Source: Caecitellus pseudoparvulus (lineage: Eukaryota; Protista; Bigyra: Bicosoecida). From it: a stretch of DNA of 64,000 bases. Location: the NCBI GenBank assembly GCA_965644315.1, contig CBFFRQ010000030.1, positions 496,001-560,000 on the forward strand. Reading direction: 5' to 3'. Both the position numbers and the translations under genes were made by a program. This document shows, in pieces, positions 50,287 through 64,000 of this stretch. Under the pieces are notes generated by a model that was not told where the DNA came from, made no database searches, and was given only the letters and a program-made list of their open reading frames with translations. Numbering within the stretch: position 1 is the stretch's first letter; each line of letters begins with the position of its first letter.

Positions 50287-51445
50287 TCAGTCTGCCTTCA
50301 CAGTGGTGGGCACGGCAGACGTGACTGCCTGCGCGACCAGCCCCAAGAGCGGGAAGAACACCAGTGCTAGGACGATGTTGTACAGTGTGTGTGCCGTGGC
50401 CACGACGCCGCCCACCGGCACCTCCTCGCCCGGCAGTGAGACAAAGCTCGCCACCAGCGGCGTGAGCATGCCGAGCAGCGGCAGCAGAGCCAGGGATATG
50501 GCGGTCTTCATGAGGGTGTACGCGAGGGAGAAACGCAGGGGTGCCACCTTGCCCTCGCTCCAGGCAGGGAAGGCGGCAAACAGCGGTGCTGCCGTTGTGC
50601 CGATGTTGCTGCCCAGCACGAAGGCCATGCCCACATGCAGGGGCAGCAAGCCTTGCTGCGCCAGAGCAATGGCGATGCCCAGCATGGCAGAGCTGCGGGG
50701 AGGGAGGGGAGCGGGCATGCCGTGCGGTGTGAGCGGCGCACTGCCACAAGCACCCTCCACGCACCTGGAATTCAGCACCATTGTCGCGACAGCAGAGACA
50801 AGCAGGCCCAAGAGGGGGTTGGACAGGGAGCTCTGCGCGAGGTTGGGTACCAAAGGCGGGCAATGCAGCGGCTGCACGGCAGTGGGGTCATGCGGGTGAG
50901 CGGCAACGCACGATGAAGTCGAGGAATGGCTGGTGCGTTTTGAGCGGCCCGATGGCGCTGCTCATGTGCCCCATGCCGAGGAACATGAGGCCCATGCCGG
51001 TGATGGCGCTGCCTGCCAGCTTGCCAGTGTTGTTGCGCCACAGGTTGGGCAGGATGAAGCGCCCGAAGGCGGCGAGGGGCAGCGCGTACTGGGTGAGCTT
51101 GAACGCGACAAGGTGTGGCGTGAGCGTGGAGCCGACGCAGATGCCCAGGCAGAAGCCCAGGCTGTCAGGCAGGCTCATCATGTCAGCTTCCAGCAAGTCC
51201 ACCACCAGCACCGACGTGGCGGTGGCGCTGTTCAAGGCTGCCGTCGCAACAGTTCCCGTGAGCACTGCGCTCCACCTGGCAGAGCAAGCCGCTTCGATTC
51301 CACTTTGCAAGGAAGACCCCAGGGCCTTCTGCAGGTTGCTGCTCAGCACCTTCATGCCGAACATGAACACTGCCACGGCCCCAAACAAGTTCAGGGCCAG
51401 CATGGGCCAGTTAATGCCGCCATCGTCGTCGCCGGCTTGCCCCAT
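50287..51445 (-). CDS. Na+/phosphate cotransporter, NptA/YjbB (SLC34/PF02690) type
   Basis: LFGAVAVFMFGMKVLSSNL, GTVATAALNSATATSVLVV, G.GLMFLGM.HMS.AI.PL, NPLLGLLVSAVATMVLNSS|SAMLGI, LGSNIGTT and AHTLYNI: two internal repeats. Two introns. Confidence 0.87.
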
Positions 51446-51629
51446 ATTCCGCAAACTGCACGTGGAATGGAAGGTGCGCACGCCACGAGTGACGGGGCGG
51501 CCACAGGCGGCGCAGAACGCCCTGCTGTGTGCCCTACAGTTGCAATCAGCAGGCGGCTCGTTGCCGGGTGCGGTGCATTGCCCTGCCGTGTCGCGGAATG
51601 TGCCACGAGCACATGTTTGCGCAGCTGCC

Positions 51630-53645
51630 TCAAGCGCGGCCGTACACGCGGGAGTAGTCCTCCTTCACCTCCTGCAGGTACCACTGGCCGGCCTCCACGG
51701 CGCTTGCCGCAGACTGGGGCGTGTACGAGTTAGCCCCATACACAGCCTTGCGGGCATCCAGCGCCTGGGTGAAGGCGGCAGGGTCCACGGCAGCACGGCT
51801 TGCCAGGCGTGCTGGCACATCGGCAGCATCGGCGATGCCCTGCAGGGTGAAGGGCTTGTCTCCGCGAGCTCCCAGAGGGTGCTCGTACCCGTTCAGCTGG
51901 GCCAGGGTGGGGGTGCCAGTGACACTGCTGGCGTGGGTGAGAGTGTCAAGGTATTGGTCGGCGGCGGTGTCTACGCCCTGCACACCGTACATGGAGGCGA
52001 TGGCGCCAGAGCCGTAGGAGAAGACGCACGCCTTCTTGTCGACCAGGCCAGCGCCCTGGGCAGACACCAGGGACAGCAGGTTGAAGAAGACAGCGGCGGT
52101 GTAGGTGTTGCCGATCTGCTGGCTGACAGCGGCACCTGGGCCCACCATGGCCTCGTAGAAACGCCCTGCCACCTGCATGGACGCCTTCATCAGGTCACGG
52201 TCCGTGATGCTGGCCGTGTAGTCCATGTCCACGAAGTCGGCGAGCGGCGCCAGGTGCTCAGGCAGCTCCATGCCCGCTGCCGCATAGCGCCGGGCGTCGT
52301 TCACGAACAGCCGCGCGAAGCTCTGCTGCACGAGCTTGTTGTAGGGGGAGTGGAAGATGGAGAAGTCGTACGCCTTCAGCAGGTCGGGCACGGCGGCGGC
52401 GTCACCCGCCTGGCGGCCCACCTTGGCCATGTGCCGGTTGTAGCAGTCGTCCACCGCCTCGATGTAGCAGCTCTGGGACAGCTTGCCGTCCACGACGGGG
52501 TACTCCGAAGACAGCACGGGCTTGTAGAAGTCGTACACGTCCACGGCATGCGTGACGCGGGTCTGGGGCACGAGGCGCAGCGGGGCGCCTGGGCCCACCA
52601 GTACCGCCACCGCGCCAGCGCCACCCGTGGGACGGGCCGCGCCCTCCTCGTACACGGCGATGTCTGCCGCTACGGCCAGGGCATACCGGCCGTCCCAGGC
52701 AGAGGACTCGACCCAGGCGGCGGAGTTGAAGAGGGCCGCGGAGCCGCCGTAGCAGGCGTTCATGGTGGTGGCGCCTTCGACGTCGCGGTTGCCGTGGGAC
52801 TCGAAGAAGTGCATGAGGGACGTCTTGGTGCTCTTGCTCTTGTCAGTGAGGCTCTCCGTGCCGACTGTGCGGGGGGGGGGGACAGCGGGGTGGAGGGGCG
52901 CGTAGGCCTCACGCGCCAGGGCGCCAGCGGCTGCGCTGAAGCGGAAATTGCAGCCACCACACCTCACGACAGCCGTCAAACAGGCCACTCACCCTCCAGA
53001 CGCCCCACATCCTTGGGGTCGATGTTGTACTTGTCCAGGAGGTTCTGAACCGCCGTCATGCAGATGGAGGAGGTGTCCTGGTTGTCGCGCACGAACGCCA
53101 TGCCCTTCTGTGCAAGGAGAGCCACTCAACGTGCGAGCCCATTGCAACAGCGACATGTCGCCGACCCAAGGCGCCCCAGGATGGCTAACCAGCATAGGGT
53201 AACAAAGCTACACGGTTCATCCAGCTGTCAGCCCGTGGAGCACCCGGTTCATGAGGGCTCTAGCCGCGGGGGCGGCAAGATGCGCTTGGCAGGAGCAACG
53301 GGGTGTGGCAGGAAACGTACCTGGCCAAGTCCGATGGTGTACTTGCCCTCGCCGACGCCGTAGTACTCTGCAGCGCACACAAGCGGTGAGCATCCATGTA
53401 GGGGTGGTGCGTGTGTGCATGGAGGGGCGGGCCTGGCACGCACGCTCGAGATCTGACTGTGCCACGAACTCGGGCGGAATGTAGGCGTCCATGGCCAGAA
53501 CGCCCACGTTGTGGGACTCGATGGCAGAGGGGCTCAGAGTGGTGAAGGCACGGGCTGAGGCGACGGCAGCAGCAGCCGTGTGGGGGCGGGCGCCCAGCAA
53601 AGCTGCAACGCGGCCGCTGACAGCTGGCGCCTTGGTGGCGGCCAT
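51630..53645 (-). CDS. HMGCS: Hydroxymethylglutaryl-CoA synthase with N-terminal presequence-like extension
   Basis: NVGVLAMDAY.P..V.QSDLE, GKYTIGLGQ, GRLEVGTESLTDKSKS.KT.LM, NACYGGSAALFN, ARPTGGAGAVA, FHSPY.KLVQ, GNTYTAA and FSYGSG. Three introns. Confidence 0.96.
52941..52951 (+). promoter_or_regulatory. GCGGAAATTGC motif copy (HMGCS intron)
   Basis: Exact copy inside intron 52865-52992. Confidence 0.35.
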
Positions 53646-53977
53646 GGTGGTGAGAGGTGGCGTTGGGAGGCTCAGGCAAACACTTGCCAGGAGGCTAAGG
53701 GTCGCAAGAAAGAGCGTGTGGAAGGTGGCAGGGTAGAATGGGAGTTGGAGTTGTGTTTGGTGCGGCACACGTGTGCTGGCCGGGGCTTCGCGCCGGCGAG
53801 GGCCCCTCCCTGGCAACACCACGGGCCCTTCCGTGCGTGCAGATTCCGCAGGGCGCCAGACCGACGGTTGCGCTCAATTTTGAGCACTCTAGTGAATGAA
53901 TCGAGCAATCGAAGCAAGCACTCGCGTGACGACGTAAACACACAAACAAGCACACCTCTGTCAACACACTGCCAGCA

Positions 53978-55576
53978 ATGGCTTTGTTCACACAGAAGGA
54001 GCAGTTGCAGCTGGAGGAGCAGACCAGCATGAGCACCGCCCTGAACATGGACGGCAAGCACATGCCCCGGTGGCAGCGCAAGGCGCTGGCCGCTAAGAAG
54101 GCAGGGGAAGCCAACACTACCCCTGTCAAGGGCGCCAAGACGCCATCCCGCACTCCCCGTGCCAAGACGCCTGGCGTAAGTGGCTGGCGCGCTTTGGCCA
54201 CCACGCCAACGGCGGTGACACAAGTGACACAAACGCCCTTTGCGCAGGCTGCTGACCGCTTCATCTCCGCCCGCACCAGCACTGACCTGGATGTGGCTCA
54301 GATGAAGTTGACCATGACCGAGGACAGCGCTGTCGGTGCCGCTGCCGGCACTTTCGGCGCTGCCCTGGGCGGGGAGCTGCTGGCGGGCGGCGAGCGCTGT
54401 GGCGCTGCGGGTGGCGAGGACGCCCGCGTCCTGGCCCTGCGCAGCAAGGCGCCCGCGCCCAAGGAGGGCTACACCAACCACCTGAAGGTGTTGTACTCCC
54501 AGAACCGCGCCGCTGGCGCCGGCAAGCGCAAGGTGACCCGGCACATCCCCTCCGCCCCCGAGCGCATCCTGGACGCCCCAGACATGGTGGACAACTACTA
54601 CCTCAACCTCCTGGACTGGTCCTGCAACAATGTGCTGGCGGTGGCGCTGAACCAGACCGTGTACCTGTGGAACGCTGTGTCTGGCGGCATTGAGGAGCTG
54701 ACCACCGTGGAGGGCGAGGAGGACTATGTCACATCCCTGTCCTGGGTGAAGGAGGGCGGTGGCTACCTGGCCGTTGGCACCAACGGCGCCGAGGTGCAGC
54801 TGTGGGACTGCGAGAAGATGAAGCAGGTGCGGTGCATGAAGGGGCACACTGGCCGTGTGGGGGCTCTGGACTGGAACGGACACACCCTGTCCTCCGGCTC
54901 CAGGGACTCCACTATCCACCACCACGATGTGCGTGTGCGTGACCACCACACTGCCACTCTGGTGGGGCACACCCAGGAGGTGTGTGGCCTCAAGTGGTCC
55001 CCCGACGGCACCCAGCTCGCCTCAGGCGGGAACGACAACCTGCTCTGCATCTGGGACAACACCACCAGCACCAGCCTGCGCACGGTGAAGCCCCGACACA
55101 CGCTGTCAGCGCACCAGGCCGCCGTCAAGGCTCTGGCTTGGTGCCCCTGGCAGCGTGGAACCCTCGCCTCTGGCGGCGGCACCGCTGACCGCACGATGAA
55201 GTTCTGGGACACCCAGTCGGGCTCCCTGCTCAACTCCATCGACACGGGCAGCCAGGTGACGTCCCTGGCGTGGGCACCCCATGACCGGGAGATCCTGTCT
55301 TCCCACGGCTTCAGCCAGAACCAGCTGTCGGTGTGGAAGTACCCCTCCCTGGCCCGTGTCAAGGACTTGACGGGACACACCTCCCGCGTCCTGCACATGG
55401 CCACCTCCCCCGACGGCCAGACGGTCTGCTCCGCTGGCGCTGACGAGACCCTGCGCTTCTGGAAGGTGTTCAGCGCACCCTCCAAGGCCAAGAAGGCTCC
55501 CAGCGCCAGCGCCAGCCAGATCTCGGCCGGCGGCGCACGCACCAGCCGTATGCTGAGCAGCCGAAGCATCCGCTAG
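53978..55576 (+). CDS. CDC20: APC/C activator Cdc20/fizzy
   Basis: C-box DRFI..R, RHIPSAPERILDAP..DNYYLNLLDW, WD40 repeats (HTQEVCGLKWS, AVKALAWCPWQ, GGGTADR) and C-terminal IR tail. In-frame 72-nt intron 54176-54247. Confidence 0.96.
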   Translation: MALFTQKEQLQLEEQTSMSTALNMDGKHMPRWQRKALAAKKAGEANTTPVKGAKTPSRTPRAKTPGVSGWRALATTPTAVTQVTQTPFAQAADRFISARTSTDLDVAQMKLTMTEDSAVGAAAGTFGAALGGELLAGGERCGAAGGEDARVLALRSKAPAPKEGYTNHLKVLYSQNRAAGAGKRKVTRHIPSAPERILDAPDMVDNYYLNLLDWSCNNVLAVALNQTVYLWNAVSGGIEELTTVEGEEDYVTSLSWVKEGGGYLAVGTNGAEVQLWDCEKMKQVRCMKGHTGRVGALDWNGHTLSSGSRDSTIHHHDVRVRDHHTATLVGHTQEVCGLKWSPDGTQLASGGNDNLLCIWDNTTSTSLRTVKPRHTLSAHQAAVKALAWCPWQRGTLASGGGTADRTMKFWDTQSGSLLNSIDTGSQVTSLAWAPHDREILSSHGFSQNQLSVWKYPSLARVKDLTGHTSRVLHMATSPDGQTVCSAGADETLRFWKVFSAPSKAKKAPSASASQISAGGARTSRMLSSRSIR

Positions 55577-56011
55577 GCCCTTGAGCTTGCACGCCCCCTA
55601 ACTCCTCTCTTGTGACCTCGTACTCGCCCGCTTCACCGCTTTGTTGTTTGTGTTTGTCCCTGCGTTTGCTTGCTTCGCCCGCACCTATGTTAGGCTCTCC
55701 TCTGTTTAGCCGTCTCGCTCACCCTGCCACTCCGCAAGAGCTGCACGCCACTCAAGCCCGTGGGTTTCGTGGCGGGGTCATCCCCTGTGGCTGCAGCCAC
55801 ATTTTACTCCCCCACTTCATCCTTGCTTCGCTCTGCCTCGCACCGACCGCGTCACCACCCCCCTCCACAGAGGCCTGCTGCCGCCCGGCAGTGGGCTTTG
55901 CTTCAAAACAATGCAAATGTAACCACAAATACTTTCAGTAGGGCGTGTGAAGCTGTCTGCACTGCCTAGGCGCCCTGGGGCACTCGCCACATCAGGAGCA
56001 CTTCATCGCGT

Positions 56012-56022
56012 GCGGAAATTGC
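56012..56022 (+). promoter_or_regulatory. GCGGAAATTGC motif copy just upstream of the JMJD6 ATG
   Basis: Exact copy 15 bp before the start codon. Confidence 0.45.
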
Positions 56023-56037
56023 ACACGCACAGGCGAC

Positions 56038-57662
56038 ATGGCTGCACAAGGTGCCGCGCTGGAGAGCAAGAGCTCGAGGGGCAGCAGCCTGCTGTTTGGG
56101 GAGATGAAGAAGCACGATCGCAACATCATTGAAAAAGCCAAGGTGCGTGCCTACTCTGCCCCATGCCCGGCCCTGCCGTGTGCTCCGCACTGCACGCTGC
56201 GTACCTGGTCCGCCTTTGCAGGAGCGGTGTCGAACAGGTGGGGAGAGCGGCATTGCAGCCTGGCACGGCAGTGGCGGTCCATGTGTGTCAAGGTGCTTGT
56301 GTGGCACTGCCTGATCCGCCCCTGTCTGTGCAGATCTGGACCTGGAGGAGTGGTGGCGCCAGGGGCACGCAGCTCACCCGGAGCGTGTAGCAGAGGTGCC
56401 AGGTGCAGGGCACCTGCCCCGCGTGCACGTGGACTCCTGCTCGCGTGAGGACTTCATTGCGCACTTTGAGGCGCCGAACGTGCCGTGTGTCATTGACGGC
56501 ATCGTGGACAAGTGGCCCGCAGCGACGGAGTGGACGCTGCCCAAGCTGTTCGAGAAGTATCGACACCGGCGCTTCAAGTGCGGCGAGGACGACGACGGGA
56601 ACCAGGTCAAGGTCAAGCTCAAGTACTTTCTCAGGTACTTGGAGCACCAGAAGGGTGGGTGGCGCCCAGGCCCACTGCTGAGCACTCGCTCATCGTCGCA
56701 CCCCTGTCCTTCCGTCGCGCGTTGCAGATGACTCGCCCATGTACATCTTCGACAGCAACTTCCCGGACGACGAGAAGGCCAAGGATCTCATGGAGGACTT
56801 CACCGTCCCCGAGTACTTCTCCGATGACCTGTTTAAGCTGGTGGGGGAGGGGTTGCGCCCGCCGTACCGCTGGTTCCTCATCGGCCCGAAACGCTCCGGC
56901 ACCAGCACACACGTAGACCCACTGAACACCAGCGCCTGGAACGCACTCATTTCAGGGCGCAAGCGGTGGATCCTCTTCCCTCCGCACACCCCCAAGCGCT
57001 TCGCCAAGGCCAAGGCCTGGCAGGACCGCAAGGCCGGGGAGGATGACGAAGCCATTGACTTTTTCAATTTCCACCTGCCGCGTGCGCTGGCGGCTGCCGA
57101 GGCGGAGGGCGTCCCCCTGCAGTACATCGACTACGTGCAGCAGCCAGGGGAGACCATGTTCGTGCCTGGTGGCTGGTGGCATGCGGTGCTGAACCTAGAC
57201 GACACGGTGGCTGTGACGCAGAACTTCTGCTCGCGCACCAACTTTCCGCGCGTCTGGCTCTCAACGCGAGTGGGGCGCAAGCGCATGGCACGCAGGTGGC
57301 TGCCCCTGCTGGAGAAGGACTGGCCTGCACAAGCTGAGGTGGCCCACGCACTGAACCGGCGAGACGGCTTCAGTATGCAGCCACGCCCAGAAGAGGTGGC
57401 GAGGGCACACGCGCGCAAGCAACGCGCCGCTGCCCGAGCAGCCCGGCGCGCAGCGGCTGGCACTGGCGCGGGCAGTGCCAGTGACAGCACGTCTTCCGAC
57501 AGCAGCGACACTTCGGACAGCGACTCAGACATTGACATTGGCACGCCAGGGGCCTTGGCAGGGGGCCCCCCCTCGCCTTGGGGGGGGCACATCCTGCCAG
57601 GTGTGGTGCAGGCCACTGGCGACATGGTCATGCGCCTGGCTACTCCAGGGCAGCAGCAGTGA
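56038..57662 (+). CDS. JMJD6: JmjC-domain hydroxylase JMJD6/PSR
   Basis: FKCGEDDDG..VK.KLKYF..Y, DDSPMYIFDS, RPPYRWF.IGP.RSGT.THVDPL.TSAWN, PGETMFVPGGWWHAVLNLD.T.AVTQNF and a poly-Ser C-region. Two introns. Confidence 0.94.
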
Positions 57663-57752
57663 CCGAGGCCGCCGGTGAACAATACACTTCCCACCTAGGA
57701 CACCCAGCTCACTGGTTTGATGGCAGGCAGCTGATCCCGCACCGCGCTCGTC

Positions 57753-58682
57753 ATGGCTGCAGGGGAGGGCGGGTACAAGGCCCGCATGTCGGGCAAGACT
57801 GTGGAGGAGCTGCAGCTCATCGACTTTGAGGAGTCCGCAGAGCTGGTACGGCGCCGGGTGCGCTGCCCCATGCGAACCACCTGTGGCCTTACTGTTCACG
57901 TTGCTTCCTGCAGGCTGGAGGGGGCGAGCGCGACGTTGTTGGACTGGTGTCCCTCCTCGCCATGTGCGTCGGGCAGTGTGCGGCTTTTGACGGCGCTCCG
58001 CTGGCTGCGTGCTCCCTCGCCGACACACACCGGCACCCTGCCTCCCCGGCGTGAACACGCAGCTGCTTTGGAGAGATCCAGGACCAGTGCAGGTGCATCT
58101 TGCAAGGCGCCCTCGCGCACGTGAAGGAGGGAGCCACGACCCGCGCTCTCGTGGAAGAACCAGACAAGCCACGGAGCATAGCATACGTGCGAACAGCAGC
58201 AGGCTGAGCATGCGCGCTGCACGACGCCACCAGGACACGACCCGCCTGCACAGTTTGTCCGGTTCTACGCCCACAAGCTGAAGAGCACGGCCGGTGCCAC
58301 ACTGCTGTGGCGCCTGGCCAAAGCTGCGGAGCAAGTGGAGCTGCCCCTCAAAGCAGCCACCATCGACGAAGACAGCACGAACACCCCCGACACGCCTACG
58401 TCAGTTGCGGCTTGTGATGCACAGTTTCGGGGGGGCGCACCGCTGCTGGTGACCATGGTGGAGGAGGCAGTGGCTGCGCTGCGTTTCATCTCCGGGCCCA
58501 TGTGGGAGCACTTGGACGAAGATGAAACGGCGGACGCAAAGGAGGAGCTGGAGGATGACGACGAAGCCGGTGACATTGGACCCGAGGCTGCCAAGGCTGC
58601 TGAGGAGGAGCTGCGTGGCTTGCTGGCTGCTGTGTTAGAGGAAGGCGGAGATGGTGCCGCCGAGGCAGGCGGCTCAGAGTGA
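57753..58682 (+). CDS. Stand-alone histidine phosphotransfer (HPt) protein, YPD1/AHP-like, 4 exons (~231 aa)
   Basis: Exons 57753-57845, 57914-57963, 58063-58186 and 58254-58682 join in frame through GT-AG introns. Product has LIDFEESAELAGG..LVSLLAICFGEIQDQ (HPt N-helices) and VRFYAHKLKSTAGATLLWRLAKAAEQVE (HPt H-box; His codon 58272-58274). Confidence 0.75.
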
Positions 58683-59256
58683 GCCGGGAGCTGGGCGGAT
58701 GCGCTCTGCCGCGAGGAGTGGGGGGGTGCAAAGCTCGCAAGTGGTGTCCACTTCGTGTTCAGTGAGAAGCGCTGCGATGCCGTGGCATGAGGCGGCGTTG
58801 TTCGCCGGCCTGTCGGAGCTAGGTGCCAGCGACCGGGGTAACGGCAGCTTCAAGTCACGGCGAAGGAGGCACGTGATCCCGCCCCTGGCACATGTGAGGG
58901 AGGGCAGGCAATGTGAGAGGAAGCAGTGCCCTGCGGGTCTCGCGCCCGCCTCACAGGGTTTGGGTGGGGGCGTGTTACGCAGGTGGAGGCACGAGAACCA
59001 CCCAGGCAGCCGTACCCTGCCGGCAGCCTTGCCTGTTCGAGGGCGTTCAGGAACACCACTCTTCGTGCTCGGAAATATTTAATCCATCCACCGTCCGCTG
59101 CACGCCACTGCGCGCCCACTTTCCCCGCCCCACCCCCATTTCGAGCCTGCCTAAGCAGCAGCTGCCGCACTGACGCTGCGCCGGAAATTGGGCGGAAGGT
59201 GCGGTATTTGACGCCTTCCACCTCCGTTTCCAAGCGCCCCCAGCCCACAGTCGAAG

Positions 59257-60898
59257 ATGAAGTTCGGAAAACTGATTCTTGATGTCCAAGCCCTGAGCTT
59301 GGAGGCTTGGCGGCCGGGTTTCATGGATTACAAGGCCTTGAAGAAGGTCCTCAAGGCAGCTCGCCCGAAGCCAGCGGATGTTGCGCCGTCACAGCTCGCC
59401 AGCCAGCTCGGTGAGTGCCTGCATCACGAAGCAGGGGGCGTTACGGGGTGCTTCGAGGGTGCTACTTGCCGCCTACCGCGTGAGCGGGGGTCCCCGGCCC
59501 CTCCAGCAGCCCCTGACCAAGCCGAGATTCGCACTGGCAAGCCCTCCTCTTTGCCACACGCAGCCACCTGCCCTGAAGAGGTGCAGTTCTTCACCATGCT
59601 TAAGGCAGAGCTGCAGAAGGTGTCTGACTTCTACTTGGTGTGCGAGAACGAGATGCTGGCGCGGTACAAGGAGCTGGTGGGCTCCTTGACCATGTACAAG
59701 GTGCGGCGGCGGCGTGGCGTTTCGGCGTGCTTCTGCCCGGCTGACCCACCAGCGAACCACGCCTTGCACGCAGGAAGGGCTCAAGGCTGCCAGCAGCAGC
59801 GATGGCATCCCCCTCCTGCAGTCTGTCGTGCAGTTTTACATGGACTTGCTGCTGCTTGAGAACTTCGCGGTCATTAACTACTGCGGCTTCGGCAAGATCC
59901 TCAAGAAGCACGACAAGGTCACAGGCTACGTCACGAAGGAGCCGTACATGCAGCGCATGGTGAACCCGCAGGAGTTCACGACGTACCCCCGCCTCATGAA
60001 GATGCTGCGCCACACAGAGCAGAGCTACCAGCTCCTCCTGCATTCCTTCCCCTCCTCCTCCCGGGCAGGGCTGCTCAGCTCGGAGAGCCAAGCACGCCTG
60101 CGGAAACTGGAGGAAGCCAAGGCCCACAGCGCCGCACAGAAGGCGTCGGAGACGGCCAGTCTGTCAGCGTCAGAAGGCAGGGCCAGCCCCGCACAGCCTG
60201 CCATGCAGCCCATGGCGCCCTCGCCCACTGGCAGCGCGGGCAGTGGCGCGCCCACGCCCAGCCACACAGCTGGCGCCGCAGGGGCAGGGGGCGCCCATGA
60301 GCGCATGGAGCTGGGGGCACACCCCCACAGCGTCCTGCATGGGGGGGGCAGCTCCGCTGGGCACTCCATGCCCAGCGCCCTCAAGACCAACCGCCACGCC
60401 GCTGCACCTCTGCAGGAGGTGGAGCTGTCTGCGGCACAGGCCCTCGTCGCCGTCGCGGCCGACGCGCAGAGCAGCAAGGGCGGCAGCATCGCCTCTGCCA
60501 CCCTACACCCGCAGCCCCTCGCCGTGTCCACGGGCATGACGGCAGGCATGCCTGGCGGCTTCCACGCCATGCCCGCCCCCGCCCCCTACGCCGCATCCCC
60601 CTACACCCATGCCAGCATGGGGTACGGCCCCCCACATGGGTACCCCCAGGCGCCGCCGCACCCGGGCTACGCCGCGCCCCAAACCTTCAACCCCAGCCCT
60701 CGATCCTACCAGCCCCCGCCCATGCTGCCCCCTGGCCAGGGCGGCGGTTACTACCCACAGTCAAGCTACGCCATGCCCGCCATGGCGCAGCCTCAGGCGG
60801 GTGTGTACGGGGCTACGCCCCCTCATGCCCACCGCATGCACCCCATGGGGGGTTATGCCCCCCCTCAGCCTTCCATGCAGGGCTGGCATGTGCAATGA
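59257..60898 (+). CDS. SPX: Stand-alone SPX-domain protein with long disordered P/Y/Q/M-rich tail (~471 aa)
   Basis: MKFGK, FMDYKALKKVLK, FF.MLKAELQKVSDFY and LLLLENFAVINYCGFGKILKKHDK. Introns 59411-59563 and 59701-59773. Confidence 0.94.
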
Positions 60899-61046
60899 GA
60901 AGCCTCGAGCTGCTCACGCACCGCTGCCAGCCGCCCCCAACTCAACCGTGATGAGTGTGTGTTCCAGTGTTCCACCCACCCCCAAGCCCACGCGTGCCCA
61001 AGTGCCGTGACAGTGCAGTCTTCAGTGATTCATCAATGCAATTTGG

Positions 61047-63368
61047 TTATGTGAAGTCGCTGCAGGGCTGCAGCGAGTGCAGCAGGCGCCCCCACAGCCA
61101 CGCCGCCTGCTGGGACGGGTCAGCGCCGAAGCCCAGCAGCCCAGCAGGCCGCCACATGCCCGCTTGGGGCCCGGGCGGAGGCGACTCGGCCATGCGGCTG
61201 CGCACACTCAGCTGGTACAGCTGAGCCATGGCACGTGGGTGCTCCATGGCGAAGTCGGGGCCGAAGCACTTTCGGGAGGTGCCGCCGTCCCCCCGTGACA
61301 CGCCCAGCACCAGCACCGCATCCATGACGAGGTCTGGGGCCACGGGTGGCGCCAGCGTGCGCTGCACGGCGTTCGCCACGGCCTGGCGCACAAACTCCCC
61401 GCAGGGGTTCCACGCGGGGCCTGCCAGGTGCCGCAGGACACACTGTGCTTGGCCCAGGGTTGTCAGGGTGGTGATGGCGGTTTGCACCTTGTGCAGGAGG
61501 CGGGTGATGGGCCCAGCCTCCCCCGTCGCCGACCCGCGCAGTGACACGTGCTCCTCCGACCCAGCTGCCGCCGCGATGTGGTGCACGACGACCACTCGCA
61601 ACACGTCCATGACGGCGCCAGTCAGGGAGGGGTGCCAGGAAGCCAGTGTGGGAAGCCCTTCCACCATTTGCTGTGCCTGGCGCTGTCTGGACTCCTCGTA
61701 CCGCCCGCTGCGCGCCGTGCATGCCTGCTGCAGGGCCTCCAGCAGCATGCAGCTGGCGATGGGGCAGGAGCGAGCAGCACGCAACACGTCCAGCGCCGAC
61801 TGCGGTGCCAGCCAGCCCAAGCAGGGCTGAGGTGGGTCGACTTTGGATGCCTTGACGAGGGGCGTGTCCGCCGCCACGCCAGGCGCCAGCAGCACGGCCG
61901 ACTCCGCCGCCGTGCCCAGGGCAATGGCACTGTGCATGGCCATCACGGCCTGCACGTGCACGTCCACAGCTGGGCCCTGCGTGTGTGTCAGCGCCGCGAC
62001 GCCAGCTCGCAGGGCTGGGGCGGCATCGGGCCCGCCCGCCACTGCCCAAGTGTCAGCCCAGCCGGTGGGCATGGTGGCGTGCCCGGCGCCCGTGCTGGCC
62101 GCTTGGCTGTCTGCACTGACGCCCGCCATGGAAGAGGGCGAGGCAGAGGGCAGGCCGTGCGTTTCAGCGTACCGTAACGCTTCCTCGGCATGGCGCAGGG
62201 CCCAGTCGCCCACCTCCCGCCACGAGGGCAGAGGGGGCAGGGCGCTGGGGGGAGGTGCCTCTGGCACTCGAGTGCTCACCCGGTCCAGCCACCGCAGCAT
62301 GAGGTGTGTGGGGGTGGTGGCGTCGTCGTCGCCGCCACGCCACACGCCCCACGGCACAGCCTGCACCGCTGCGAGGGGGGGTGCCTGCGAACTGCGTGTC
62401 CCCGGCAGGGCTGACTCCTGCAGACTCAGGCTGTGGGCCACTCGCAGCAGGGCGCCATGCGTCGCCTGCAGTGCCGAGTGGGGGCGGCACAGTGCGAAGG
62501 GGGCTGGCACGCTGGCCTCTCCCAACACACTGCCTCGCAGGCCACGCGCGACACTGTGCAGGCGGTGCGTCAACATCACGCACAGCGCCGAGGTGATGGT
62601 GGGCAGGTGCAGGCGCAGGTGTGGCGCTGTGAGCACTGGCGGCACATTGGCCGCCGGGGGCGCCAAGCGACGGTTCAGCGCCGCACTGCCCACCACGTGC
62701 AGCAGCACGGCAGTATGGTCGTGTACCCCCCGCTCCCGCACCAGGTGCTGAGGCAGGGAGAAGGGCACGTGCGCCCTGAAGCCACGCGCACCCACCAACC
62801 AGTCCAGCAGGGTCACGCGCTTGCCCCCTGAGGCCTTGCGTGCCAGGCTAAAGATGAGCGTGCCCACAGCTGAGTGGGCTGGGCGCAGCAGCTCGGCTTG
62901 CAGGGCCGGGTCCTGGGACACGACGGACGCCACACGCTCGCCCTCGCCGTCTGCGTCCAGGGCCCGGTCCAGCGCCGCCATGAGCCGCATGAGCAGGTGT
63001 TCCCGTGCCTCGGCATCGCTGCCGTGGGAGGCGGCACTCCAGGCGCTGGCCAGTCCCATGACGGCACGTAGCTTGCTGCCGATGCCGGAGTAGCCGTCAC
63101 GCACTGAGATGGCGACCTCCCGCTGCCGGCCCTTGGCCTCACGCATGAGCTTGGGGATGGTCCGCTTGGCGTCTGCTTCCAGCACCAGCTCCTCTGGCAC
63201 GGCGCTGGTGGTGCGGGCAGCGCTGCCTCGGCTCAGAACTGCGCAGGGACGAAACGGCGTGCACAACCTGCGCCAGTGCCCTGGGCACAAGAAACGTAAC
63301 GCACTCTGAGCCACAGCTTCATGGTGTGTGGAAACGGGGGCCTGCAGAGCCGCTGCCCAGGACTCCAT
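61047..63368 (-). CDS. Negative elongation factor C/D (TH1)-like helical protein, divergent
   Basis: Recalled TH1-like patterns: AISVRDGYSG, TLIFSLA..LLDWL, CPIASCMLL, LASWHPSL..V.DVL, LTTLGQAQCVL and FVRQAV..TLAPPVAPDLV. Start is either 63368 or 63497. Confidence 0.5.
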   Translation of the reverse strand: MESWAAALQAPVSTHHEAVAQSALRFLCPGHWRRLCTPFRPCAVLSRGSAARTTSAVPEELVLEADAKRTIPKLMREAKGRQREVAISVRDGYSGIGSKLRAVMGLASAWSAASHGSDAEAREHLLMRLMAALDRALDADGEGERVASVVSQDPALQAELLRPAHSAVGTLIFSLARKASGGKRVTLLDWLVGARGFRAHVPFSLPQHLVRERGVHDHTAVLLHVVGSAALNRRLAPPAANVPPVLTAPHLRLHLPTITSALCVMLTHRLHSVARGLRGSVLGEASVPAPFALCRPHSALQATHGALLRVAHSLSLQESALPGTRSSQAPPLAAVQAVPWGVWRGGDDDATTPTHLMLRWLDRVSTRVPEAPPPSALPPLPSWREVGDWALRHAEEALRYAETHGLPSASPSSMAGVSADSQAASTGAGHATMPTGWADTWAVAGGPDAAPALRAGVAALTHTQGPAVDVHVQAVMAMHSAIALGTAAESAVLLAPGVAADTPLVKASKVDPPQPCLGWLAPQSALDVLRAARSCPIASCMLLEALQQACTARSGRYEESRQRQAQQMVEGLPTLASWHPSLTGAVMDVLRVVVVHHIAAAAGSEEHVSLRGSATGEAGPITRLLHKVQTAITTLTTLGQAQCVLRHLAGPAWNPCGEFVRQAVANAVQRTLAPPVAPDLVMDAVLVLGVSRGDGGTSRKCFGPDFAMEHPRAMAQLYQLSVRSRMAESPPPGPQAGMWRPAGLLGFGADPSQQAAWLWGRLLHSLQPCSDFT

Positions 63369-63380
63369 GCCCGGCACCCT

Positions 63381-63391
63381 GCGGAAATTGC
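63381..63391 (+). promoter_or_regulatory. GCGGAAATTGC motif copy in the divergent NELF-like/GARP promoter
   Basis: Exact copy 12 bp from the ATG at 63368. Confidence 0.45.
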
Positions 63392-63858
63392 CTGCCTGTC
63401 CACAAGGCTTCACCTGCTCCGCCCCCCTGCGCCTACCAGCACACGCCCCAGCATACAGGGTGGTTCCATCCAGGCCTGCAGGTAGTCCCTCTTGCATGTC
63501 CGGATTTTTTCATTGCGCCCGACTGCAGTGGAAAATCAGCAGCCAGCCTGGCCACTGGCTCACTCACGGCAGACAGCCCCAATCGCCAGCCAGACGGTGC
63601 AGGGCCGAGCGAAAGTCGTCGCCGCCACAATGCCACCGCGCACAAATCCTCGCACCCCCCATCGCCATGCGTGCGGCAGCCACCTGTCCGTGTGCCAGCT
63701 GCCCACCACGAGTGCCGGAGGCAGCTTTGAAGCCTCGCGCTCTCCAGCTTCGTGACTGGCAGCGAGGCAGCTCTGTGAAAGGCGCAAAGGAGCACGGCTG
63801 GGCTTCACCGGCTGCTGTGCAGCCCAAGCCCTGTCCCCCTCTTCACACTGGCCTCACC

Positions 63859-64000
63859 ATGGCAGACAACAGTGAGGGCCGGAAGCGCCGGCGGGTCAGA
63901 GGGGATGGCGCCGGTGGTGGATTTGGAGGGCAGCCAGCTTCCAGCGCGCCCAAGCGCCGCAAGCGCTTTCTGTGGACAGATGACCTGCATCGCATGTTTG
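63859..64000 (+). CDS. GARP/SHAQKYF-class Myb-like transcription factor, N-terminal fragment (runs off the window)
   Basis: Translation MADNSEGRKRRRVRGDGAGGGFGGQPASSAPKRRKRFLWTDDLHRMF: NLS-like basic patches, then the R-x-x-W-T-x-x-L-H-x-x-F start of the GARP domain. Not in the ORF track. Confidence 0.8.
   Translation, partial: MADNSEGRKRRRVRGDGAGGGFGGQPASSAPKRRKRFLWTDDLHRMF

Follow-up and report, generated by a model that had tools for sequence, protein, structure and literature searches.

A stand-alone SPX gene, a GARP-type Myb gene, a Na/Pi cotransporter gene and a divergent HPt-like gene within 14 kb of a compact genome

Plant SPX proteins bind the LHEQLE coiled coil of PHR factors, and nutrient-assimilation clusters of microbial eukaryotes, such as the nitrate clusters of green algae and fungi, consist of contiguous and co-induced genes. 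SPX proteins bind PHR factors in plants, and in Phaeodactylum phosphate transporters and phosphatases are under the negative control of a stand-alone SPX protein, which is exerted via a single-Myb PSR/PHR factor (PMC8233357; PMC12396336). Here we describe a window of 64,000 nucleotides (positions 496001-560000 of contig C30, in a genome assembly of 30.6 Mb and 215 contigs), which within 14 kb contains the sole stand-alone SPX gene, the sole GARP-type Myb gene and the sole NptA-type transporter gene that we detected in this genome, together with a divergent HPt-like gene. Spliced genes were searched exon by exon in six-frame translations, and all genome copy numbers are lower bounds. A first interpretation of the DNA, termed the sequence-only reading in the following, had proposed that these genes form a module joining a His-Asp phosphorelay to SPX/GARP phosphate control, for which we find no support beyond their adjacency. 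Instead, we regard the stretch, with a probability of roughly 55%, as an ordinary gene neighbourhood whose linkage is ancient, in a compact genome poor in introns. The SPX protein, the GARP factor and perhaps the transporter may act, by analogy, as new members of the SPX-PSR cascade known from diatoms and plants.

The locus resembles the SPX-PHR/PSR cascade, as described for plant SPX1-4 with PHR1/PHR2 and, in another stramenopile, for the Phaeodactylum SPX protein with PtPSR1 (PMC8233357; PMC12396336), in its stand-alone SPX protein, in a single-Myb factor with an SHLQK(Y/F)R recognition helix and in phosphate transporters as likely targets. It differs in the physical proximity of the genes, in a factor without the LHEQLE coiled coil defined by Pfam and in the lack of a P1BS site nearby. 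With nitrate-type clusters it shares a transporter and regulators placed near each other in a compact genome, whereas unrelated housekeeping genes are interspersed here. The features of the four genes are listed below; RNA evidence was taken from contigs of environmental and culture runs, with X17 denoting a marine metatranscriptome and X19 a near relative, whose run is guessed to be RNA.

50287-51481, minus strand: NptA/SLC34-type Na/Pi cotransporter, with its two Na_Pi_cotrans repeats in separate reading frames and a short intron near 50877-50888
57753-57845, plus strand: HPt-like gene, exon 1, with an ATG start and a GT at 57846; 55-68% conserved in L005, L017 and L020
57914-57963, plus strand: HPt-like gene, exon 2, with an AG acceptor at 57912-13; 71-74% conserved; joint from 57963 to about 58063 in a contig of X19
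58063-58186, plus strand: HPt-like gene, exon 3; 35-57% conserved; joints on both sides in a contig of X19
58254-58682, plus strand: HPt-like gene, exon 4, with an acidic tail and two conserved helices, the first being the His helix FYAHKLKSTAGA
59257-59409, plus strand: SPX gene, exon 1, Pfam SPX; joint 59409/59563 in X17 and X19
59563-59698, plus strand: SPX gene, exon 2; joints 59409/59563 and 59698/59772, both GT..AG
59772-60898, plus strand: SPX gene, exon 3, with the closing part of the SPX domain (KILKKHDK) and a low-complexity tail of about 280 residues
63859-64000, plus strand: GARP-type Myb gene, exon 1, running on to window-equivalent position 64029; later exons at L002:607-1754, past the window

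The identities and coordinates proposed for all four genes are borne out by matches in Pfam, NCBIfam and PDB, and so is their spacing: the SPX gene is co-oriented with the adjoining HPt-like gene, the gap from the HPt stop to the SPX start (58683-59256) measures the 574 bp that had been claimed, and the GARP gene, placed 3 kb beyond, has its start at 63859, at a distance of 2.96 kb from the SPX stop. The SPX protein, which begins with MKFGK, matches the Pfam SPX family (PF03105) in two pieces with 50.0 and 48.5 bits at a cut-off of 27.8, and a Pfam search of the protein found no domain other than SPX. Since both introns (59410-59562 and 59699-59771, GT..AG) are skipped in contigs of the marine metatranscriptome and of the near relative, one of them being seen spliced in the metatranscriptome, the gene consists of three exons and is expressed. 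The basic cluster K19, K22, K23 and K26, located in the KILKKHDK ligand-binding helix, is invariant in our alignment (A4), and the protein would be a stand-alone sensor of inositol polyphosphates or pyrophosphates of the class of plant SPX1-4 and the diatom SPX protein. SPX matches were found at two loci of the genome, the other one being fused to an AstE_AspA hydrolase (succinylglutamate desuccinylase/aspartoacylase) at C44:259043-261091 (L013:5044-7092). Two further properties of the gene are recorded as side observations. Its first intron, with 153 nt, is in frame and free of stops, and its retention would insert 51 residues into the SPX domain within a single continuous open reading frame (ORF). 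Within the tail (60130-60898), a motif VELSAA.ALVAVAADA is kept in this genome and in a sister group, with weaker echoes in distant SPX proteins.

The GARP gene continues past the end of the window, where the sequence-only reading had suggested to look for an SHLQKY motif. Exon 1 closes with ...FDHGLK and exon 2, in the next stretch of the contig, reads ACTPKLLFELM...SDHIKSHLQKFR, in which the motif is present in the variant form SHLQKFR. The two exons match TIGR01557 with 19.5 and 25 bits, and an orthologue from a relative (P0026, with an in-frame intron read through) reaches 36.8-43.1 bits at a cut-off of 29.3. All PDB matches are plant GARP domains, with OsPHR2 (29.4 bits), ARR10 (28.5 bits) and LUX (27.4 bits) lying within 2 bits and being effectively tied. 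By its sequence we thus classify the factor as a GARP-type Myb protein, with the PHR, ARR and LUX subfamilies effectively tied. As had been noted, it lacks an N-terminal receiver, since only 35 residues precede the Myb domain, and the genome scan found no Response_reg match on contig C30. A PHR-type LHEQLE coiled coil, which had been named as a further feature to look for, did not turn up: neither the factor nor its full-length orthologue matches PF14379 at E up to 5-10. Two C-terminal motifs are conserved in the factor and in its homologues (L002:1300-1754; P0026, P0027, P0028), one of them (QMR..M.MHR.M..AS.V.I.KYSG, about 250 residues downstream of the Myb domain) being loosely LHEQLE-like and the second being a terminal DPFAFLP.

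A homologue search with the GARP region returned three close relatives only, one of them on a 52-kb contig. In the genome, the exact DNA pattern for HLQK[YF] occurs at 9 sites compared to 8 in the control; six of the eight other sites were viewed as translations and all lie in junk reading frames, with those on C96 and C136 being outside this count, and a locus on C81 encodes an SHAQKYF-type Myb protein and no GARP domain. The factor would act as a nuclear DNA-binding protein and, since no second factor of this type was detected in the genome, is the best candidate for a phosphate-starvation factor restrained by SPX. A scan of the 64-kb window for the PHR1-type P1BS site GNATATNC found no site where 1.4 were expected, an absence that counts neither for nor against a factor whose own binding specificity may differ.

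The transporter is spread over two ORFs that are not in the same frame, which match Na_Pi_cotrans (PF02690) with 113.5 and 32.9 bits (cut-off 29.1). Because the orthologue that adjoins the HMG-CoA synthase (HMGCS) gene in a sister lineage shows the identical split between frames, we ascribe the split to an intron and not to a sequence error. As a cotransporter with two repeats, the protein would import phosphate and is a plausible target of the GARP factor. Na_Pi_cotrans was detected at one locus of the genome, two loci of PiT/PHO4 transporters are both found elsewhere and a genome-wide search for the VTC domain found none. The phosphate toolkit thus seems small, with two PiT transporters and one NptA transporter detected and no VTC found; Phaeodactylum, in turn, reportedly has six SPX genes.

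Interspersed among the four genes are others without an apparent relation to phosphate. The sequence-only reading had listed HMGCS, CDC20, JMJD6 and 'NELF-like' genes among them; Pfam confirms the first three as HMG-CoA synthase, CDC20 and JmjC proteins, and the fourth is an ORF without a Pfam match that would bear out its name.

51630-53822, minus strand: HMG-CoA synthase, a housekeeping gene, Pfam HMG_CoA_synt_N and HMG_CoA_synt_C, with the N-terminal part in the upstream ORF
53978-55576, plus strand: CDC20/Fizzy, single exon, Pfam WD40_CDC20-Fz with 437 bits
56396-57662, plus strand: JmjC/Cupin_8 hydroxylase (JMJD6-like), Pfam JmjC and Cupin_8
61047-63497, minus strand: ORF of 816 residues, family unassigned, no Pfam match, head to head with the GARP gene

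The evidence for an ordinary neighbourhood is found in the retention of these genes in relatives. Contigs L009, L011, L017-L019 and L020 represent one sister group, whose JmjC proteins are 93-98% identical among themselves and about 80% identical to the one of the window genome. On L009 the genes follow each other as GARP (minus), unknown ORF (plus), SPX (plus), HPt (plus), JmjC (minus) and CDC20 (plus), which is the order of the window. Compared to this contig, SPX, the HPt-like gene and CDC20 are each inverted in place, thus giving three single-gene inversions within six genes (window 53978-60898) without a change of order. SPX, HPt and JmjC are also present on L011 and L018, and on L020 HPt and JmjC have on their upstream side a short stretch that matches the C-terminus of SPX. 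The other side of the neighbourhood is covered by L021, where CDC20 is followed by three extra genes, HMGCS, NptA and the genes for a C2 protein, a 327-residue protein and a palmitoyl thioesterase; the adjacency of HMGCS and the transporter is thus kept, and orthologues of the last three proteins are located at 24.7-33.2 kb of the window. Between the C2 gene and the GARP gene, 8 of 11 adjacencies are kept, unrelated genes among them, and the retention of the series HPt-SPX-ORF-GARP therefore corresponds to what background synteny would lead to expect (about 0.35 for three steps).

At a larger distance the linkage was not seen. None of 80 SPX loci from metagenomes (382 kb in total, with 28 loci of 5 kb or more) contains a GARP motif, HPt, NptA or JmjC, and the same four were likewise absent from the surroundings of more distant SPX homologues on two longer contigs. 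Of the synteny that the sequence-only reading had suggested to examine, the recurrence in one sister group thus holds, whereas the linkage is conserved no more than that of unrelated neighbours and is absent at 82 distant SPX loci.

An apparent break of the linkage within the sister group was considered and withdrawn. On L017, a SNARE-like gene is found upstream of HPt, and neither SPX nor the unknown ORF nor GARP occurs within 16 kb. L018, which downstream matches L017 at 99.4% identity and shares its HPt-like protein, has the 3' end of SPX upstream; the upstream block of L017 corresponds to contig C13 of the window genome, and the junction shows no repeat, and for these reasons we do not count L017 as a loss. 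The two sequences (L017:9397 and L018:841) diverge abruptly 385 bp upstream of the identical HPt-like protein, into the SNARE-like block in one case and SPX in the other, which reflects either a metagenome chimera or a rearrangement at strain level.

Estimates of co-location by chance weigh against an ordinary neighbourhood. For genes taken a priori, the chance of finding one GARP gene within 5 kb of one stand-alone SPX gene is about 3e-4, that of one of three phosphate transporters within 10 kb about 2e-3, and for either of the two HPt-like genes and a distance of 1.5 kb it is about 2e-4; the rarity that enters these figures is that of lower-bound copy numbers from the exon-by-exon, six-frame searches. 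In a Monte Carlo estimate, any three of 15-40 genes of a 'phosphate theme' fall within 14 kb with a frequency of 2.5e-4 to 6e-3, and it is only the post-hoc choice of this theme, among many possible ones, that brings the co-location near expectation and leaves it marginal. Also against an ordinary neighbourhood speaks the adjacency of SPX and the HPt-like gene, which outlasts three local inversions. Had these genes been named in advance, their co-location would be improbable; overall we consider it suggestive, not decisive.

A competing view is that selection has kept a known cascade close, for example in a shared chromatin domain, in which case SPX, GARP and the Na/Pi transporter would be neighbours by function, with the HPt-like gene as bystander. 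The only detected stand-alone SPX gene and the only detected GARP-type Myb gene are 3 kb apart and the only NptA gene is 8 kb away, the chance estimates are small and the sister group retains the linkage; for helix 3 of the factor (HIKSHLQKF/YR), OsPHR2 gives the best alignment, and in a diatom a single-Myb PSR factor and phosphate transporters are placed downstream of a stand-alone SPX protein (PMC8233357; PMC12396336). On the other hand, four unrelated genes are interspersed, with three more between CDC20 and HMGCS in the sister group, unrelated adjacencies are conserved to an equal degree and the linkage is not seen at the 82 more distant SPX loci. Neither a P1BS site nor an LHEQLE coiled coil was detected, and PHR2 scores within 2 bits of ARR10 and LUX. 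We thus hold selection for proximity to be unlikely, at perhaps half the weight of an ordinary neighbourhood or somewhat less. In an ordinary neighbourhood, a cascade from SPX over GARP to the transporter, of the already known kind, would still be plausible by analogy, and any regulation among the SPX, GARP, transporter and HPt-like genes would act in trans.

The HPt-like gene, the fourth of the set, consists of four exons, all of which are conserved in relatives. Introns 2 and 3 are absent from a contig of X19. Exon 4 matches the Pfam Hpt family (PF01627) with 19.2 bits, below the cut-off of 24.6 (19.7 bits in the genome scan), and the pieces of reading frame in exons 2 and 3 gave no Hpt match in Pfam. 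The match spans positions 27-65 of the model, which is exactly the His-helix hairpin, and the corresponding helix, FYAH(K/Q)LKSTAGA.LLWRLAKAAE.VELPLK, shows almost no variation across five lineages. Within it, the His, Leu and Lys of the HxxK motif are invariant, whereas a Ser replaces the canonical Gly (HKLKSTAGA). When compared to 1.84 billion representative proteins, a profile of the His-helix region found 7 proteins. Among these, P0025 (AHRIKGAAANL...AAENLELPHK), detected with a family-profile E of 6e-4 across the library, is the only one to pass the Pfam Hpt cut-off, with 28.5 bits. A second HPt-like locus of the same genome, on C19, combines the canonical HALKGTASNL with the shared ELP.K signature (AHALKGTASNL...ALELPCK). 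This paralogue (C19:271885-273147; L015:5885-7147) is encoded in an open frame of 421 residues directly upstream of an H+-pyrophosphatase gene.

Further structural and sequence searches with the family brought no specific match. A PDB sequence search with the exon-4 profile returned no HPt protein and only acid-rich chance matches, and a search of the ESM Atlas with the HPt-like protein of a relative gave no usable match. The AF2 model of the relative's read-through from exon 3 over the intron to exon 4 is all helical and of mid-confidence (pLDDT 65, pTM 0.64), and in Foldseek and VIA-align searches it retrieved generic helical bundles only. A first multi-exon alignment (A1, MAFFT) was discarded for having misplaced half of exon 3.

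Based on these data, the HPt-like gene probably encodes a divergent HPt homologue with Ser in place of the canonical Gly. It would be doubtful, by comparison, to regard it as devoid of a working phosphotransfer protein, either as a pseudo-HPt in which the Gly following HxxK has changed to Ser or as an unrelated helical and acidic protein. Such a view could account for the Pfam score below cut-off, for the PDB and Atlas searches without HPt matches, for a family of 7 among 1.84 billion proteins with one above the Hpt cut-off and for the generic bundles retrieved with a mid-confidence model. It fits poorly with a His and surrounding helix that are nearly invariant in five lineages, with a Pfam match that coincides with the His-helix hairpin of the model, with P0025 as bridge from the family profile to Pfam Hpt and with a paralogue in the same genome that carries the canonical motif and the same ELP.K signature. 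As a putative HPt homologue, the protein resembles Ypd1 and the AHP proteins in being small, stand-alone and, as predicted, helical, in its conserved His, whose H-x-L-K motif coincides with the His helix of Pfam Hpt, and in its setting in a genome with hybrid kinases and many receivers. It is unlike Ypd1 and AHP in the Ser following HxxK, the Pfam score below cut-off, the long acidic tail and the tiny size of its family.

In the genome as a whole, we detected 2 HPt-like loci, 3 or more HisKA loci and, in large ORFs, 25 or more receiver domains, so that a phosphorelay is present apart from this locus. Kinases and receivers of this number require an HPt protein irrespective of phosphate, and the HPt-like protein, as one of two divergent paralogues, would most likely shuttle phosphoryl groups for hybrid histidine kinases in general. 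The full module, where HPt would relay a His-Asp phosphorelay signal into SPX/GARP phosphate control, could invoke that HPt and SPX adjoin in both lineages despite local inversions and that hybrid kinases and many receivers are encoded in the genome. It faces a GARP factor without receiver and a contig without receiver match, and it may be compared with type-B response regulators (ARR-B), GARP factors that are fed by HPt proteins: the factor shares with these the GARP DNA-binding domain and a helix 1 (LWT..LH..F.AA) resembling that of ARR10, whereas the receiver domain is missing. The most constant neighbour of the HPt-like gene is the JmjC gene, which adjoins it in all five of the five lineages seen, and not SPX, and no HPt is found near any of the more distant SPX loci. 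A published link of SPX to HPt proteins did not turn up; the papers found that name both concern plant hormone and nutrient signalling.

The module is thus not supported, because unrelated neighbours are equally conserved and distant SPX loci lack these neighbours, because the factor has neither receiver nor PHR-type coiled coil and the window no P1BS site, and because the HPt-like gene and its paralogue are both in keeping with a general phosphorelay, and we consider the module very improbable. The same low weight is given to a lineage-specific unit composed of the only stand-alone SPX, the only GARP factor and the divergent HPt protein, whose adjacency would be kept for the integration of phosphorelay input with inositol-pyrophosphate sensing. 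If the HPt input were real, it would establish a new connection between two signalling systems, which present evidence does not favour. If, in turn, SPX and GARP work together, the organism would offer a minimal system for an SPX-PSR phosphate circuit outside plants and algae, in which a single stand-alone SPX protein, a single GARP-type factor, few phosphate transporters and no VTC were detected, and would help to ask how SPX controls a Myb factor without the plant-type coiled coil.

The window has a G+C content of about 65% and contains few introns, and its DNA is also present in marine and seawater metagenomes. A search of the genome for light-harvesting protein genes detected none, and the nearest Atlas cluster of the CDC20 protein of the window is mostly diatom-derived. 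The host is presumably a marine heterotrophic protist and probably belongs to the stramenopiles.

The 816-residue ORF is separated from the GARP gene by a head-to-head spacer of 361 bp and contains a 66-nt intron (63239-63304), whose spliced joint is found in the X17 metatranscriptome. Compared to its orthologue on L009 in the sister group, the encoded protein is only 30-34% identical.

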